Sequence record: OP589283.1
Direction: 5' to 3' (one strand)
Length of the DNA: 64,000 nt
Part shown: piece by piece, positions 2,258-9,716 of the stretch
Position numbering within the stretch: position 1 is the first letter of the stretch
How the letters are laid out: every line of letters begins with the position of its first letter
Made by a program: the position numbers and the translations under genes
The notes under the pieces: model-generated
What the model saw: the letters and a program-made list of their open reading frames with translations, nothing else
Databases searched by the model: none
Told to the model about the DNA's origin: nothing

Positions 2258-3418
2258 TTATTTGCTAAAGTTTGCTTCAAACACATTGTACTTCTTCCCT
2301 GTAGTAGGGTGTATTGCTTTAAACCCTAATTTCATACTTCTCATTACGTTTGCTTTGTTAAACCCGTGAGTAGCAAAATCCTCAGGTTTACTTATTTTTA
2401 ATACTTCTCCGTCCCCAACCAATACCCACGTTTTCATTACAGCTTTTGGTTTTTCTGGTGGTATTAGTTCTTCCCCATCTTCAAATCGTTGTACCGAATA
2501 ACCTTTAATTGTTCCTTGTTTTTCCCAAGTACCTTTTAAATGAGTTTCGTTAAATCCATGTTTATCTCTTAATTCTCTTCCTGTCAATCCATCTATGACA
2601 TCCCCTGTTTCTTTATGTGTTAGCCGATACGTAATCACACTCACTAAGTTCTTCATCGCTTCAGCTAGTTTAAGGCAATTGTTGGCTCTTAATGCACTGT
2701 ATTCTTTGATATCAATAACTTCCCAAGTACACCCTTTGTGTTTTGACATTTTGCCTTCTCGCACCTGCCATAAACTATTAGCGTACAACCCATATTGTTT
2801 ATAATCATCTCCGCCACAAACAACAATGACTTTGCCGTTGTGTTCTGGTATATCAACAACGGTGCCTTTCATCGGGATGACCCCTTGTTTGTTAACCCCC
2901 TTTGGATACGATACTAAATTGTTTGTTATTGCATGATCTTGATTCTCTTTGTTAGTAATCCATTCTAAGTTCCAAGATTCATTACACGTCTTATCGCAAT
3001 TGATGTGATTGATTTGTAAAGCACTTAATGTGGTGTCCCTATGTCTAGTTGGTTTAGGACAGTAAGATGCACCCACTAATCTATGAACCTTTCTTATATC
3101 CCCGTCTAAATTTACATTGAGATAACCTTTCTTGTCTTTACTCGGAGTAAGGCATGTATTTGTTTTAATACTGTAAACGCGTCCACGATTACTAACCAAG
3201 TAATCAGGATATTTAATAGGACGACTATTGGATTTTGCTTTTGTACCAACTATGAGTGGATAGTAGATACATTCATCCCACACTTCGAATTCAGGATCTT
3301 CTTTAATGTGTTGATTTACCACCCCCCTCGCTATATGAGCTTTTGTGTTAGTCTTTACATGTTGGTTAGTGAATGTGTCTTTTTGTATTTGTGATAAACA
3401 GTTAATTAATGTTAACAT
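2258..3418 (-). CDS. Free-standing HNH homing endonuclease (NUMOD4 + HNH + repeated C-terminal DNA-binding modules)
   Basis: YLVSNRGRV (NUMOD4-like); HRLVG...QINHINCDKTCNESWNLEWITNKENQDHA (HNH); three short degenerate C-terminal modules. Confidence 0.9.
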   Translation of the reverse strand: MLTLINCLSQIQKDTFTNQHVKTNTKAHIARGVVNQHIKEDPEFEVWDECIYYPLIVGTKAKSNSRPIKYPDYLVSNRGRVYSIKTNTCLTPSKDKKGYLNVNLDGDIRKVHRLVGASYCPKPTRHRDTTLSALQINHINCDKTCNESWNLEWITNKENQDHAITNNLVSYPKGVNKQGVIPMKGTVVDIPEHNGKVIVVCGGDDYKQYGLYANSLWQVREGKMSKHKGCTWEVIDIKEYSALRANNCLKLAEAMKNLVSVITYRLTHKETGDVIDGLTGRELRDKHGFNETHLKGTWEKQGTIKGYSVQRFEDGEELIPPEKPKAVMKTWVLVGDGEVLKISKPEDFATHGFNKANVMRSMKLGFKAIHPTTGKKYNVFEANFSK

Positions 3419-3535: not shown

Positions 3536-4885
3536 TTATTTACAAGCTTTCTTTAAATCTAACTTTGTTGTTGCTGCCCCGGCAGAGTGATATGCTTTCA
3601 TACGTGTTAACATGAAGTTGGTTGGGATACGAGTAACCGCAGCGGTCATTTGGTCTGCGTTACTTCCAAGTACTTTACCTAAACACACATTACAGAAATC
3701 ACCATTAGGTTGCATACAGAACGCGGGAACACGCACATTAATGTATTGTCCGATTAATGGTTTGATAGTTTCATTAGTAAGTTCAATTGCGTCTCCAGAA
3801 TCATTGTTCGGGTTATAATAACTACCCAACCAATATTTCTGGTTAAACTCTGTCATCATCACACGTTCACCTACCTTAGTACCACAGTTCACACCGGGAT
3901 GAGCTTTAGTTCCCCCAATCAACTGGATGGTGTCTTTTACTGCTGCACCACCTTCACCTGTAGCTTTACCACGGTCATATGCACCAGATACCGTAGAGTT
4001 AACGTAGTTAGTGATTAGGTTTAAATCAACCCCCTCGTCTAAACTTCGTTTTAAGGTAACTAATTTACCTGACTCAGGGTCAGCTTCTACCCCGAAGGCA
4101 ATAAACATCCGTTTACGGTTATCTTCGATAAACTTGGCTTGAGTATAAAACGTGGCATTGTAACTCTTCATCTGTTCTTTCATATCAAGCGCGACGCACT
4201 GCTTAACGATATTAGAGAACACAACAGGATCATCGAGTTGGTCTTTAAACTCTTCATAGAGTTTTTCTTTCAACGCCATAACCGCTGGAGAAGGGCTTAA
4301 CGATTCAATACAACTACTGCGTATCCAGTAGATATCCAATCCTTGTAAATAGTTACCGTGTCGAGCAAACTTTTCTACTGCCTTCTTGTAATCATATTTA
4401 CCGGGAGGATAAACAGGTCGCCATTCTGGATTTCTGGCCTCTTCATCGGTAGGACGAATTTCATCCACCAATACATCAGAAAGTAACTTGCGGACGTAAC
4501 CGTCTGTAATTTCTCCGTTGAGGTATGTAACACCACCATTGTCGAATACTTCGTAAAACAAAATAATATTACAAAGTAATATACCGAAGGTAGTAATCAT
4601 GGGCTCATGAATAAACGGATGTAAATCAGGTGTGATGTCCAGTAATTCATCCTTATCGAATAAAGGTTGTTGAGAATACGTAACATCGTCGATAACAACT
4701 TCATTGCCTTCATGCATGAAATGAAATTTATTACCCTTTACATACACCCCATAAGGGGATGCCTTAAAGGTTTTCATGGTTTCTTCTTCATCAGGAAGCT
4801 GGATAGAAACAACACTGATTAGTGTATTTTTGTCTCCGTAACTTCGAGAACTAAGAAACAATTTTAGATACGCTAGTTTGTTCAT
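3536..4885 (-). CDS. Virion RNA polymerase beta-prime C-terminal subunit (phiKZ gp80-like)
   Basis: Zn-binding cysteines (NCGT...FCMQPNGDFCNVCLG); C-terminal LTRMKAYHSAG aligns with the trigger loop TQLTMRTFHIGG; 449 aa; family gene order. Confidence 0.9.
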   Translation of the reverse strand: MNKLAYLKLFLSSRSYGDKNTLISVVSIQLPDEEETMKTFKASPYGVYVKGNKFHFMHEGNEVVIDDVTYSQQPLFDKDELLDITPDLHPFIHEPMITTFGILLCNIILFYEVFDNGGVTYLNGEITDGYVRKLLSDVLVDEIRPTDEEARNPEWRPVYPPGKYDYKKAVEKFARHGNYLQGLDIYWIRSSCIESLSPSPAVMALKEKLYEEFKDQLDDPVVFSNIVKQCVALDMKEQMKSYNATFYTQAKFIEDNRKRMFIAFGVEADPESGKLVTLKRSLDEGVDLNLITNYVNSTVSGAYDRGKATGEGGAAVKDTIQLIGGTKAHPGVNCGTKVGERVMMTEFNQKYWLGSYYNPNNDSGDAIELTNETIKPLIGQYINVRVPAFCMQPNGDFCNVCLGKVLGSNADQMTAAVTRIPTNFMLTRMKAYHSAGAATTKLDLKKACK

Positions 4886-5805: not shown

Positions 5806-6534
5806 ATGAGTCATAAACGCCAAAAGCCAAAGAAACGCAAAGTGTCTAAAGGCAGACCCCAAAAATTACATAAAATCAATGGTCGAATTGTCAAACGCGA
5901 CATTGCTGGCCACATCAATATGTTAAAGGCCCAAAACAAGCTTTCTGAAGCGATTAATGCTGGCGAGCTAAACGACGACACCATTCCTGATTTGATTCAA
6001 GAAACCATTTCAGGTGTGTATCGCATGACTACATCATTGTTATGTATCAATGCATTGTTAAAAGAACGCACCATTAAGTTAATCCCTAACTTCGCTTCTA
6101 TTTCAGAAAAATGGGATCGCCAAGTAGTGCGTTTTGAAGAAAACGCCGAAGTCTACATGATTCTGAAAGAACAACAACTCACCGACATCGAAAACGATAA
6201 AAACCTTTCAGAAGAAGAAAAGGCGGAAATGTCAAAAGATGAGTCAAATTTATCAGACATCGTCTTTGACTTAGTGGATGGTATTAACGAATTGTTCATC
6301 AACCTCGCAACTGAAATTGCTGATTTAACAATGCGTTATTCAAATGAAATTAACGAGTACATTAAAGACCATGTGCTCGAAAATGAAACACCTAACGATT
6401 TTGCGGTGCGTATTTGTCAAGCGCATATCGAAGAGATTCGTGCTAAATACGCAACTAAGTTAAACCAACCTATTGAAGAAGTCGCTAAAGAGTTAATCGG
6501 CGAGCTGGCTTCTGGAGAACCTGCTAATGTCTGA
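5806..6534 (+). CDS. Hypothetical protein with K/R-rich N-terminus (242 aa)
   Basis: GAAGGA RBS; MSHKRQKPKKRKVSKGRPQK basic head on an acidic helical body. Confidence 0.85.
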   Translation: MSHKRQKPKKRKVSKGRPQKLHKINGRIVKRDIAGHINMLKAQNKLSEAINAGELNDDTIPDLIQETISGVYRMTTSLLCINALLKERTIKLIPNFASISEKWDRQVVRFEENAEVYMILKEQQLTDIENDKNLSEEEKAEMSKDESNLSDIVFDLVDGINELFINLATEIADLTMRYSNEINEYIKDHVLENETPNDFAVRICQAHIEEIRAKYATKLNQPIEEVAKELIGELASGEPANV

Positions 6535-8212
6535 ACCGAACGAACCAATTAATCAAGACGCTCATGTTGAACAACCTGAAACGTCTGTAGCCAAAAACGA
6601 ACCCAAGGCAACGTACAAAGAAGAACATACAGCAAAAAATACCACGTTTGCTGATTATGTTCCACCGGAGCAGTTTATTACTAAACTGTATACTCCTGAA
6701 GAATCCAAGAAGGTATTGGAACAAGGTTATTTAACCTACTTCTTGGGTAACACTAAAAAGGTGATTGAAGAAGCCAACGAAATCATCGCTAACTGGGTGG
6801 AATACACCAGTGCTGAACTTGATTTCATGGACGGTGAAATCAAAGAAAGTGCATTCAATGCGATCAAAAACAAATGGAACGAGTTCAGTGCGGTTAAGTT
6901 CCCGGGTATGGATGAAACTGAAATTCTGGATTACTGCCGTAAACTGTACGCGTTCAATAACGAACTGTTGGATACGGTAAAGGTGCGTTCTAAGGTGATG
7001 CGTGAAAAAGGTATCACCAATATGAACGACCGCGGAGGTCTAACCACAGGTGACGTCATCGGTAAAAAGCCTCGCCGTAATAATGCACCTGACTTGGTTG
7101 AACGCATGCGTATTCAGTCCATTGGCGCACAAGAAGAAGAATATCAGTTTGACATTCTGTTGCGTAACAGCTTTGTCTTTTTGACTATTCGTCGTCCTTC
7201 TCGTTTGAAGTTAGCTGAGTTGATTCGTGAAGTGCACCAAACCGTTAAGGGATATGTTCGTAGCACCAACAACCCAACCATTAACTTAAGTTATTTGGCG
7301 GCGGTACGTGCGCTGTGGAACTATATTACCACGTTAATCATTAACTGTAGTGTAAAGGACATCACGGACTTTAAACAATTGGAAGATATCATCCTTATCA
7401 ATGATGTCGAAGCGTTAGCGGTAGGGTTGTCTAAGGCTAGTATGAACAAAGGTCATAACGTTCAACTGCATTGTTTAGAGCGTGGTTGTGGTTGGGTTGG
7501 TGTTGGTTTAGCTGACCCCGCTAAGTTACTTCAGAAACGCGATAACCTTATCACGAAAGAAGAAGCAGCTATCTATGCGAATATCAGCAACAGCCGTTTG
7601 AAGTTAACGGTCCAGCAAGTGCGTGAACTCCAACGTAAAAGTGCTTACATTGAAGACAATCGTGTTTACAATGAACAAAGAACTTATTACTTGGAAATCG
7701 AACCTCCTTCACTGCGTGTTGGGTTTGAAGCGCTAGACCAAGTTGCAGATTCAATTAACCCACGTATTCAGAAATTACGTGCCAACTCAACGCAAGAAGA
7801 GTTCGAAGCCCAACTTCAAGATTTGTTGATTAACGTATCCCCAATGGAATATATTCATTGGGTAGCAAGAGCAGCTTCTCCTGGTGAAACAGCAGAAGAA
7901 GATGACATCATTGAACGTTATGGTAATAATCAAGCGGCGTTTAACGAAGGTCTGATGACGGTGTTAGAAGACGATAGTTATCTTGCCAACCGATTAGCGA
8001 ATAAGGTACGTTTACAATCTCCATTTATGTCACGCACTTATTGTGCGGTTGGATATTTTGAATGTCCTGAGTGTAAAAAGAATTCAAAAGAACACGATGA
8101 AATTGGTTTAGGTTACACACCAATTAATCCGCTTATGAATTTTTTTACCCTTACCCAGTTGAAGATGATAAACGAAATGCAAACGCTCACGAAGTCAGAC
8201 GAAGCCCTCTAG
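6527..8212 (+). CDS. Conserved 561-aa protein with Cys pairs; putative tail-assembly chaperone (short form)
   Basis: GGAG RBS; CLERGC and CPEC motifs; T7 slippery run 21 codons before the stop. Chaperone role is inference. Confidence 0.8.
   Translation: MSEPNEPINQDAHVEQPETSVAKNEPKATYKEEHTAKNTTFADYVPPEQFITKLYTPEESKKVLEQGYLTYFLGNTKKVIEEANEIIANWVEYTSAELDFMDGEIKESAFNAIKNKWNEFSAVKFPGMDETEILDYCRKLYAFNNELLDTVKVRSKVMREKGITNMNDRGGLTTGDVIGKKPRRNNAPDLVERMRIQSIGAQEEEYQFDILLRNSFVFLTIRRPSRLKLAELIREVHQTVKGYVRSTNNPTINLSYLAAVRALWNYITTLIINCSVKDITDFKQLEDIILINDVEALAVGLSKASMNKGHNVQLHCLERGCGWVGVGLADPAKLLQKRDNLITKEEAAIYANISNSRLKLTVQQVRELQRKSAYIEDNRVYNEQRTYYLEIEPPSLRVGFEALDQVADSINPRIQKLRANSTQEEFEAQLQDLLINVSPMEYIHWVARAASPGETAEEDDIIERYGNNQAAFNEGLMTVLEDDSYLANRLANKVRLQSPFMSRTYCAVGYFECPECKKNSKEHDEIGLGYTPINPLMNFFTLTQLKMINEMQTLTKSDEAL
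8140..8146 (+). promoter_or_regulatory. Candidate -1 programmed frameshift site (U UUU UUU)
   Basis: AAT TTT TTT ACC in frame 0; the -1 frame is open from 8128 (after TAA 8125-8127) to 8685. Confidence 0.7.
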
Positions 8213-8685
8213 ACTTCATTAACCCAGTAGGCCGTGTTCATTCTGAAAGTTACATGACAGTCAGTCGTATGTTGATTGGTAAACCGTTTCATGAAGATAA
8301 GTACGCCCCTACTGGGTTACAAGAAAGCCAAATGCATGACTTCGACATGGGTTATTATACGTTAAGTGATAAAGACCCCTTTCGTTCTATTAAGTGGATT
8401 GAAGAAGAAAATGCGTATGTCCATCAATACTCCTTAGAGGAGCTAGGACGTGTTTACGCGTATAACCGTTTACAAGAATATATTCCATTAGACTTGTATT
8501 TAAACTTACCCAGTATCGTTGTAGACGATTTAATTACAGGGTTGGTTAACGGTCGTTCTGAACGTGAAGAATACGATGACGAGCAACGTAAGAAACGTAA
8601 AGAAGAAAACGGAGATTCACTTGATGATGAAGAAGAAAAGCTGAAAAAATTAGTCGAAAGAGCAGAAAGATTGAATAAAATTTAA
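8146..8685 (+). CDS. -1-frame extension (track ORF 8254..8685), probably the C-terminal part of a 719-aa fusion
   Basis: No SD before ATG 8254; the frame reads YPYPVEDDKRNANAHEVRRSPLDFINPVGRVHSESY-MTVSRM without a stop. Confidence 0.7.
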   Translation, partial: YPYPVEDDKRNANAHEVRRSPLDFINPVGRVHSESYMTVSRMLIGKPFHEDKYAPTGLQESQMHDFDMGYYTLSDKDPFRSIKWIEEENAYVHQYSLEELGRVYAYNRLQEYIPLDLYLNLPSIVVDDLITGLVNGRSEREEYDDEQRKKRKEENGDSLDDEEEKLKKLVERAERLNKI

Positions 8686-8732
8686 AATGTTATGCCCTAA
8701 ATTTTATTCATCCCTTTACTGAGGAAATCGAC

Positions 8733-9662
8733 ATGACCAATAAAAGAAAACGCGCGACAGTGGCTGCACCTACTAATCCGCTGCCGACCAACGAATTCGG
8801 AGAGATAATCTTGGAAGATAACAATATCGAACTTTCTAAAGTTCCTACCACTGAAGTTGACGTTGCTGAATTAAAAGATGCAACTGAAGATGCTTCTTCT
8901 GATACACCTGAAACTTCTGTTGAAGAAACCAGCGAAGAACTCACCGGTGACGCATCAGAAACTAATGAGGAAGATGAACCAAAACTTCCTGGTGATTCTG
9001 AAGAAACCCCTTCATCAAACGATGCACTTGATCTTTCTGGTGACGCCCCATTAAATCTTACCCCAACCAGCGTTACACCTGATGAACCTGCCGGTGTAAT
9101 CAAAATGGCTATTTTTGATGGTCAAGTTACCGCGTTAAAGGTAACAAGCGACGAAGATAAAATTATCGAACGCTTAAAGGGTAAAGCAGTTACTATCGCC
9201 AATTACGAAGATGATGAAGGCGCGGTAAATCCAATCGTCGAAGTTATCACCGGTCGTATTCAAAAACATTTCGGATTTATTTTGGGTACAGCCAGCTTCC
9301 GCGATGAGAAACACAAACTCGAACAAGTGGTTAGTTTCGGCCAACAAATGATTCGCTTAACTCAGTTAGAAGAAAATTGTTTCTTTAAAGTGATGGATTA
9401 CATCATGACTGAAATGCGTAATCGTGGTGAAAAATTAAGTCCAACCCAAATGTTCCGCTTTAACTTGGTAGCCGCCAAAGACTTTAGCACCGACATGAAT
9501 CGTTACAATGATTTCATGAACGTGTGTTATAAGTTTGCACGTAACTATGCCGATCGCAGCAAGTTAATTAGTCAAATCGACTTTAACAAAGTTTGTGCGG
9601 GTCGTACTGTAAAAGAAGCTGAATTACTGAAGACGTATTTCCGTAAGTTAGCGAACAGTTAA
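8733..9662 (+). CDS. Hypothetical protein with acidic disordered N-terminal half (309 aa)
   Basis: GAGGA RBS; about 120 aa rich in E/D/T/S/P followed by a helical domain. Confidence 0.85.
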   Translation: MTNKRKRATVAAPTNPLPTNEFGEIILEDNNIELSKVPTTEVDVAELKDATEDASSDTPETSVEETSEELTGDASETNEEDEPKLPGDSEETPSSNDALDLSGDAPLNLTPTSVTPDEPAGVIKMAIFDGQVTALKVTSDEDKIIERLKGKAVTIANYEDDEGAVNPIVEVITGRIQKHFGFILGTASFRDEKHKLEQVVSFGQQMIRLTQLEENCFFKVMDYIMTEMRNRGEKLSPTQMFRFNLVAAKDFSTDMNRYNDFMNVCYKFARNYADRSKLISQIDFNKVCAGRTVKEAELLKTYFRKLANS

Positions 9663-9681: not shown

Positions 9682-9716
9682 CCTTACTCCGGAACCTTTT
9701 GGGTTCCGGAGTAAGG
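9682..9716. terminator. Bidirectional terminator
   Basis: 15-bp stem CCTTACTCCGGAACC / GGTTCCGGAGTAAGG between convergent genes. Confidence 0.85.

Follow-up and report, generated by a model that had tools for sequence, protein, structure and literature searches.

Does the gene at positions 6527-8212 of a 64,000-nucleotide (nt) stretch of Shewanella phage FishSpeaker (OP589283.1; genome 203 kb, host S. oneidensis MR-1) encode one protein or two? In this stretch, called the window below, a predicted protein of 561 amino acids (aa) is followed in the -1 frame by a small coding sequence (CDS) that GenBank treats as a gene of its own. An earlier note, made from the letters of the window, proposed that ribosomes slip on a run of seven T's close to the larger gene's 3' end and thereby make a 561/719-aa pair akin to the tail chaperones of other phages. 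We find that a programmed -1 ribosomal frameshift at 8140-8146 very probably does yield this nested pair, a reading supported by 55 of 55 related loci and by selection on the bases of the heptamer, and that the proposed kinship with tail chaperones fails. The locus comprises the following elements.

6527-8212, + strand: frame-0 gene for the 561-aa protein, GenBank UYE93479, 'hypothetical protein'
8128-8212, + strand: zone open in both frame 0 and the -1 frame, 85 nt, from comparison of the reading frames
8140-8146, + strand: putative slippery heptamer T TTT TTT, codons AAT TTT TTT, from family-wide conservation, codon statistics and the E. coli motif class
8146-8685, + strand: -1-frame extension, 179 codons plus stop, predicted to be decoded after a slip, from its open frame and its conservation
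8254-8685, + strand: downstream CDS according to GenBank, UYE93480, 143 aa, in the -1 frame

The sequence reads as the note had described it. In its frame-0 context, ...ATG AAT TTT TTT ACC..., the run of seven T's at 8140-8146 is an X XXY YYZ heptamer in phase with frame 0, which ends 21 codons further on, at a stop at 8210-8212. After a stop at 8125-8127, the -1 frame stays open from 8128 until its next stop at 8683-8685. The annotated ATG at 8254 lies 36 codons past the heptamer, and the 20 bases before it contain no Shine-Dalgarno-like (SD-like) sequence. The short product has 561 aa and a mass of ~64.2 kDa, and the predicted long product 540+179 = 719 aa and ~83.0 kDa, the latter mass being the sum of the masses of the two parts. 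In our reading UYE93480 is the C-terminal four fifths of the extension rather than an independent gene. No gene is broken here (0 breaks), and the change of frame is a recoding signal.

Conservation of the site across the family

The upstream protein matches phrog_4585 ('unknown function') with an E-value of 3.5e-98. A chain of tblastn searches leads from FishSpeaker to EL gp47 and, from the family member P0068, to SL2, PhiPA3 gp074, 201phi2-1 gp136 and Goslar gp081, relatives that GenBank notes tie to phiKZ gp77 and EL gp47. In the Chimalliviridae core-genome table of Prichard et al. (PMC10299810 supplement), phiKZ gp077, Goslar gp081 and RAY gp267 together make up cg18. On these sequence matches we take the FishSpeaker protein to be a member of the Chimalliviridae core gene cg18 / phrog_4585, one of roughly 70 core genes common to all nucleus-forming jumbo phages and still listed as a 'hypothetical protein'. 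Two names invite confusion: 'gp77' in the Goslar structure paper is Goslar's capsid decorator, a different protein, and 'gp136' in the PhiPA3 papers is the major capsid protein.

We read 55 distinct loci of this family at the nucleotide level, drawn from three sources with some duplicates among them. Twenty-three are tblastn matches picked without regard to the site and unbiased toward Phe-Phe (FF); 37 come from IMG/VR by way of a peptide pattern that demands FF, an FF-biased set with some duplicate isolates already included; and 4 come from metagenome contigs. The loci span FishSpeaker, RisingSun, EL, Miami, OBP, the phiKZ-like SL2, PhiPA3, 201phi2-1 and Goslar, together with an SPN3US-like phage, RSF1, LucasX and Vibrio, Aeromonas, Klebsiella, Serratia and Erwinia phages, and so represent the nucleus-forming jumbo phages as a whole. 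Protein identity among the relatives bearing the site is 15-45%, the site being conserved over divergence down to ~15%.

The conserved T run and -1 overlap that the earlier note suggested looking for in homologs are both present in 55/55 loci. N TTT TTY occupies the aligned FF position in each, the frame-0 stop lies 8-44 codons past the site in each, and the -1 ORF (open reading frame) continues for 154-185 codons after it. The heptamer is T TTT TTT in 35 loci and T TTT TTC in 17, which makes 52/55 perfect T TTT TTY; the first base is imperfect in the other three (PhiPA3, G TTT TTT; Noxifer, G TTT TTC; one metagenomic locus, C TTT TTT). Goslar has the longest T run, with eight T's (CTT TTT TTT, positions 3914-3922 of stretch L048), and Noxifer the shortest, with five. 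Frame 0 continues for 37-44 codons past the site in the FBKp24, Yaphecito and Ea277G clade versus 8-27 elsewhere; in that clade the tail unique to the short product is longer, and twice as much sequence is dual-coded.

The protein data agree with this picture. A search of 5.8 billion proteins returned 24 homologs of the upstream protein, all of 555-621 aa, among them one 99%-identical from independent assemblies and four at 73-82% identity with 555-563 aa; the same 561-aa product comes from independent assemblies (P0001: 3 sequences, 2 contigs, two sources). A profile search of 1.84 billion representatives gave 873 clusters, and in 134 of the 145 distant representatives listed the C-terminal end lies 4-38 residues past the FF that follows CPxC. 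The only invariant columns in an alignment of 100 members (19% mean identity) are three cysteines and F539 and F540, the two residues of the site. A single-frame fusion of ~720 aa is absent among the 24 close and 150 distant homologs listed, the longest of which have 621 and 657 aa, respectively. To judge from these comparisons, the two-frame arrangement was already present in the ancestor of the entire phiKZ gp77 / cg18 family of nucleus-forming jumbo phages.

Matches of 686-687 aa in BFVD (phiEaH2 and others) were considered as single-frame fusions and rejected on the readable proteins of the same clade: pEa_SNUABM_43 (684 aa) and SPFM17 (655 aa; phrog_8054 type) have a longer N-terminus, end just past FF and have the site. 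A few distant members vary at the FF itself. F-L stands in place of F-F in P0085 (...TFLHL), P0152 (...SFLTL) and P0159 (...SFLSL), which would fit another last base of the heptamer, and a single F stands at the site in P0048, P0080, P0092, P0100 and P0131.

Codon choice at the site goes beyond what FF demands. The statistics are drawn from the 23 tblastn loci only, and the binomial tests treat lineages as independent, so the P values are overstated. In 23/23 loci TTT is used for the first Phe of the site, while elsewhere in these genes TTC is preferred and TTT accounts for 148/468 (32%; P ~3e-12). The wobble base ahead of the site is T in 21/23 loci, under ten different amino acids (P ~1e-9), and the second Phe codon is TTT in 14 loci and TTC in 9. 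Such a bias is the signature of a tandem-slippage X XXY YYZ heptamer: the bases are selected beyond amino-acid needs, with X and Y fixed and Z free within what tRNA-Phe can read. Synonymous sites are long saturated at 15-45% protein identity, which tempers the caveat of kinship on these tests.

Ribosome or RNA polymerase as the agent of the proposed shift

In the mechanism that we propose, most ribosomes would read through the heptamer and stop at 8210-8212, giving the 561-aa, 64-kDa protein, while a fixed minority would slip back one base with two tRNA-Phe in the P and A sites on TTT TTT. Both tRNAs would re-pair perfectly with TTT in the -1 frame, and the slipped ribosomes would read 179 more codons to 8685, producing a protein of 719 aa and 83 kDa. 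This long form would share its first 540 residues with the short one and continue with a linker, a small domain and a charged helix.

In measurements of all heptamers in E. coli, Sharma et al. found H_HH.U_UU.Y among the most efficient -1 motifs; U_UU.[U,C] is among the three most shift-prone tetramers (PMC4066793). That the cg18 loci have only T or C as the last base fits the shift-prone U_UU.Y class, and loci with an imperfect first base can still work because the U_UU.Y tetramer alone is shift-prone. We infer an efficiency perhaps of the order of 10%. The bacterial U_UU.U_UU.Y sites of insertion sequence (IS) elements, which produce transposase fusions at a set ratio (PMC4066793), belong to the same motif class; unlike them, the cg18 site lies in a phage core gene and has no conserved downstream structure or SD-like stimulator.

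The signal in cg18 would be essentially a bare heptamer, with neither RNA structure nor upstream SD-like stimulator conserved. Stimulatory elements, whether a downstream hairpin or pseudoknot or an upstream SD-like sequence, are common at -1 sites and not obligatory. RNAalifold gives no shared RNA structure in the 130 nt around the site in 28 sequences, the 90 nt past the FishSpeaker site fold no better than shuffles (z = -0.64), the site region has no Rfam match, and no upstream SD-like stimulator was seen on inspection of the FishSpeaker sequence. The GAAGTC/GACTTC hairpin to which the earlier note drew attention does exist, starting ~45 nt past the site, but it is insignificant in the comparison with shuffles and unconserved in the 28 relatives. 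Many loci of the EL/RisingSun clade have a near-identical GAAGCCCTCTC string ~55-65 nt past the site, for which RNAalifold gives no pairing partner; it may be conserved because both frames code there or because it holds an RNA or nascent-peptide signal that has escaped recognition.

The main mechanistic rival, which we consider distinctly unlikely, moves the slip from translation to transcription: the RNA polymerase of the phage (or host) would stutter at the T's, and a minority of the mRNAs, their run length altered, would be read conventionally into the same long product. The site is a homopolymer (T7 in 35 loci, T8 in Goslar), these phages use their own unusual multisubunit RNA polymerases, and UUUUUUU is under-represented in all frames of E. 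coli genes, possibly via slippage (PMC4066793). However, the run is only six T's long, with C next, in 17 loci, six long in two others and five long in Noxifer, which is short for polymerase slippage, and the pattern of constraint is that of tandem tRNA slippage, with positions 1-6 fixed and position 7 free between the Phe codons. We infer from this that the ribosome, and not RNA polymerase, is the agent of the shift. The spread of T-run lengths, from eight in Goslar to five in Noxifer, could serve to separate ribosomal from transcriptional slippage.

Probable translation of the -1-frame extension from the site

In relatives the first in-frame ATG of the -1 ORF is found 27-100 codons past the site, at no conserved position and mostly without an SD, and gene callers therefore report only fragments of 104-160 aa; GenBank records annotate fragments of 45-182 aa. 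In the SL2 RefSeq record the 165-codon -1 ORF (3640-4134, L045) is nearly all unannotated, with only a 45-aa ORF at 4000-4137, and in the Simmy50 record (L052) the start of the small ORF is annotated upstream inside the big gene, which results in a 136-nt overlap.

Conservation of the extension as protein begins with its first codon, ahead of any such start. When the -1 ORF was compared by tblastn with 50,697 phage records, matches began at query residue 1-3, before any start codon, and in RisingSun, EL, Miami, Aeromonas phages, OBP and SXP01 they overlap the end of the match to the upstream gene. Extension residues 2 and 4 are proline in 28/28 sequences with variable third codon positions, and the leucine at extension codon 22 is invariant in the same set; all three precede any start codon. 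Further downstream, entropy is 1.29 bits at the first codon position, 1.03 at the second and 1.68 at the third, a three-base periodicity of the coding type. When FishSpeaker is compared with two relatives whose upstream proteins are ~80% identical to its own, most substitutions from the frame-0 stop to the annotated ATG lie at third positions of the -1 frame (position 2: 0-2; position 3: 4-9). In the same comparison nucleotide divergence is ~9% in the dual-frame zone versus 27% further downstream, about three times lower, as expected for dual coding. The -1 frame thus appears to be translated from the site and not from a downstream start.

The extension is far less conserved than the upstream part, its length being constant. 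A profile of the EL/OBP/RisingSun-clade extension barely detects the phiKZ-clade versions, with weak colinear matches only, and a motif acidic-aromatic-[LF]-x-x-P can be seen by eye at about the same place in most clades. The structural model, of low confidence with a predicted local distance difference test (pLDDT) score of 59, suggests a ~50-residue disordered linker, a small hairpin-plus-helix domain and a long charged C-terminal helix, and the last 45 aa are 64% D/E/K/R. A fold search with this model gave no meaningful match.

Virion proteomics of Goslar bears on both annotated ORFs. In liquid chromatography-tandem mass spectrometry searched against annotated ORFs, gp081 was found with 24 peptides, 49% coverage and ~22 (15-35) copies per virion, like the virion RNA polymerase (vRNAP) subunit gp078, and gp082, which is part of the -1 extension, with one peptide and ~3 (2-5) copies (Table S4, bioRxiv 10.64898/2026.04.21.720040). 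The gp082:gp081 ratio of ~1:7 is compatible with a minority frameshift product; it rests on a single peptide and proves nothing. The same sample contained chimallin and PhuZ at ~126 and ~171 estimated copies plus a putative RNase HI (bioRxiv 10.64898/2026.04.21.720040). With non-structural proteins this abundant, carry-over is possible, and the virion membership of gp081 can therefore not be read from the table alone. Of the 28 proteins modelled in the Goslar virion structure none is gp81, and the hub is assigned to gp13, gp48, gp203 and gp62 (bioRxiv 10.64898/2026.04.21.720040). In 201phi2-1, gp136 and gp135 are without the note 'identified using mass spectrometry' that their neighbours gp138 and gp139 carry.

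Could these be two ordinary genes, the downstream one translated from an internal start, with the T run merely encoding an FF that the structure needs? The annotation says as much, in that 23/23 GenBank records inspected either give a separate small CDS or leave the region blank; T4 gp26 has a C-terminal FF with non-slippery codons, so FF may have a role at the protein level; and gp082 was detected, by its one peptide. We nevertheless regard two genes as very unlikely. The start is not conserved, protein-level conservation extends upstream of any start, and in 55/55 loci the -1 frame is already open ahead of the site; codon choice is non-random beyond FF (TTT 23/23; preceding T 21/23), and throughout the family the two ORFs keep their -1 relation. 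That the frames are an artefact of homopolymer sequencing or assembly in one continuous ORF is next to impossible: such runs are error-prone on some platforms, but independent assemblies yield the same 561-aa product, relatives of 73-82% identity yield 555-563 aa, the two-frame layout is common to 55/55 loci from many laboratories, platforms and metagenomes, and a single-frame version occurs in 0/174 homologs. It was an error of this kind that the earlier note had asked to see ruled out.

Several points weigh against a frameshift at this site. The first base is imperfect (G or C) in three loci, one of which has only five T's. Only the 23 tblastn loci are unbiased, the 37 IMG/VR loci having been chosen via the FF-requiring pattern, and the binomial tests take no account of phylogenetic relatedness. 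The searches described above (the 28-sequence fold, the shuffles and Rfam) found no stimulatory element, so the efficiency could be low. The frame-0 tail past the site is also somewhat conserved (...EALS or similar), so conservation of the overlap may partly serve the short product; at 8191-8212 and in aligned columns 74-84, frame-0 E-A-L-S-stop (or similar) and -1-frame R-S-P-L or S-F-L are both conserved. The single gp082 peptide, finally, would equally fit an independent small protein.

We found no description of this arrangement for phiKZ-like phages in the accessible literature, including the core-genome paper, the Goslar structure and a 2016 recoding review; an older report in a subscription journal is possible. 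A transposon-sequencing (Tn-seq) paper names no cg18 homolog, and a joined CDS is annotated in 0/23 GenBank records inspected. In kind the event is an ordinary -1 heptamer frameshift; what is new, and apparently undescribed, lies in the gene family concerned, in how deeply the site is conserved and in the lack of annotation. Should the frameshift be real, this locus is annotated wrongly in every genome of the family: a ~700-aa protein is missing and a spurious or truncated small ORF stands in its place, which leaves the long form beyond the reach of proteomic databases derived from such records. The few phage recoding events outside the classical tail-chaperone genes would gain a U UUU UUY site that is deeply conserved and free of a stimulator, and a core function would depend on a fixed ratio of two isoforms. 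Dependence on a fixed ratio is a hallmark of assembly chaperones, and it therefore offers a handle on a protein of no known function.

Possible function and gene neighbourhood

The gpG/gpGT pair of lambda and the E/E+E' pair of P2 arise from a -1 frameshift that is conserved (Xu, Hendrix and Duda 2004, as summarised in PMC5009743), and it was to these families that the earlier note had assigned the FishSpeaker genes. The likeness to lambda G/GT is considerable: nested short and long products from a -1 frameshift close to the gene's 3' end, predicted here from sequence; a frameshift that is kept across very divergent phages when the protein sequences are not; and two ORFs annotated in most genomes. 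The upstream part, however, has 540 aa in contrast to roughly 100-150 in the G/GT type, and the cg18 gene, unlike G/GT, does not lie between the tail tube and tape-measure genes. The note had seen no tape-measure gene beside the pair, and indeed there is none among the neighbours, nor does any of the window's large ORFs that were scanned look like a tape-measure gene. The cg18 protein has no sequence or fold similarity to chaperone families: Pfam, NCBIfam and PHROG give no chaperone family match, and Foldseek matches to 'tape measure chaperone' models have E-values of 1.5 or more. Products of the G/GT type are expected to be absent from mature virions, and the detection of the cg18 protein in Goslar virion mass spectrometry leaves such absence in doubt. 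Membership of the lambda G/GT or P2 E/E+E' chaperones was rejected, since size, synteny and fold all fail. That the pair works like G/GT, as a fixed-ratio short/long morphogenetic factor, is a reasonable analogy, not a family identity.

The cg18 protein has two conserved cysteine pairs.

7472-7489, + strand: first cysteine pair, C316 and C321 (Cx4C), invariant in 100 family members
8063-8074, + strand: second cysteine pair, C513 and C516 (CPEC), 23 residues before the slip-site FF

The Cys pairs that the earlier note pointed out are indeed conserved, C316, C321 and C513 being invariant and C516 present in at least 90% of the 100 aligned members, and the CPxC...FF arrangement recurs in the C-terminal sequences of distant members. 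Together the four residues likely form a zinc site. The AlphaFold2 model of the 561-aa protein is of good quality by its own scores (mean pLDDT 85, predicted template modelling score 0.85). The upstream protein has no Pfam or NCBIfam match, 10 distant members have no Pfam match, and no PDB entry matches the upstream protein by sequence or by fold.

A comparison with T4 gp26 (baseplate hub) and gp51 (baseplate hub assembly protein), also proposed in the earlier note, has weak support from predicted structures and from the CPxC...FF arrangement and none from hidden Markov models (HMMs). Foldseek against BFVD places jumbo-phage homologs first and then several T4-like models of 246-285 aa labelled 'baseplate hub assembly protein' or 'baseplate hub subunit' (E 1.5e-4 to 1e-2, probability 0.99-1.0, template modelling score 0.2-0.3 on the query and 0.45-0.59 on the target), predicted structures being compared with predicted structures. 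The GenBank record of pEa_SNUABM_43 labels its homolog 'T4 gp26 like'. In T4 (NC_000866) gp26 and gp51 have one CPxC each, and the C-terminus of gp26 consists of CPEC, 13 residues, FF and 3 residues, the same layout as in the short products. The differences are that gp26 and gp51, of 208 and 249 aa, would match only the C-terminal half of the cg18 protein, that the FF codons of gene 26 are TTC TTT, which is non-slippery, and that the second T4 product, gp26', is annotated from an internal in-frame start rather than a frameshift. Family HMMs score 0.1-1.7 bits against gp26 and gp51, which amounts to no HMM-level similarity, and there is no Pfam T4_baseplate match. In hhalign against the family profile gp26 (162) and gp51 (156) rank 1 and 2 of 27 over a baseline of ~133 for any sequence; hhalign gave 'probability 99%' even to shuffles, and only the rank was kept and the E-values discarded. 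The link to T4 hub-assembly proteins is suggestive, not established.

T4 gene 25 begins on the last base of the gene 26 stop (7800-7860, - strand, L061), that is, in the -1 frame relative to gene 26, and the FF of gp26 lies four codons upstream of the gene 25 start. The layout echoes the jumbo-phage locus and looks coincidental.

Our preferred functional assignment, held tentatively and at somewhat less than even chances, is a zinc-binding morphogenetic factor of the tail or baseplate hub with a distant relationship to T4 gp26/gp51. In this view the short:long ratio would be set by the frameshift, and a minority of the molecules would be tethered to another partner through the extension, as in lambda G/GT. 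A more specific version, which we think rather unlikely, is a functional counterpart of G/GT built independently on a gp26/gp51-like zinc-ribbon scaffold, with long and short forms at ~1:7 for hub or tail initiation; if this is true, frameshift pairs of fixed ratio have arisen in tail morphogenesis on at least two occasions, with T4-type hub assembly factors and lambda-type chaperones as answers to one and the same problem. Alternatively, the protein may be associated with the virion at low copy number and linked to the virion-RNAP genes beside it.

Three observations speak against a morphogenetic function. Pfam, NCBIfam and PHROG give no tail link, HMM similarity to gp26/gp51 is nil and no PDB fold matches; the neighbours are virion RNAP, helicase and DNA polymerase genes rather than tail genes; and the ~20 copies per virion in the Goslar mass spectrometry suggest more than a pure assembly catalyst would leave behind. 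The presence of chimallin and PhuZ in the same Goslar preparation tempers the objection from copy number.

The cg18 gene keeps a conserved position beside gp78-, gp79- and gp80-like genes, within a conserved block of gp78-like and gp79-like genes and a virion RNA-polymerase subunit gene, with a helicase or DNA polymerase nearby. In FishSpeaker the neighbours are gp78-like and gp79-like genes (the latter a virion protein in relatives), the RNAP beta subunit, an HNH endonuclease and DNA polymerase, and PHROG matches at the locus are only to 'unknown function' families.

5806-6534, + strand: upstream gene of the same operon, 242 aa, phrog_28183, position as phiKZ gp78, from PHROG match and synteny
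8733-9662, + strand: downstream gene of the operon, 309 aa, phrog_14374, from PHROG match
9682-9716, between the operon end and the DNA polymerase gene: hairpin with a 16-bp perfect stem, 9 G-C pairs and a 3-nt loop
9725-11506, - strand: DNA polymerase gene, convergent with the operon
2258-3418 and 3536-4885, both - strand: HNH endonuclease gene adjoining the RNA polymerase beta-subunit gene, from GenBank annotation

The stop of the upstream gene at 5806-6534 overlaps the ATG at 6527. The operon spans 5806-9662 and ends at the hairpin at 9682-9716, which is probably a bidirectional terminator; no terminator-like site lies between the two ORFs of the cg18 locus. The HNH endonuclease and RNAP beta genes lie side by side, as one would expect if homing endonucleases go along with the split RNAP genes in these phages.

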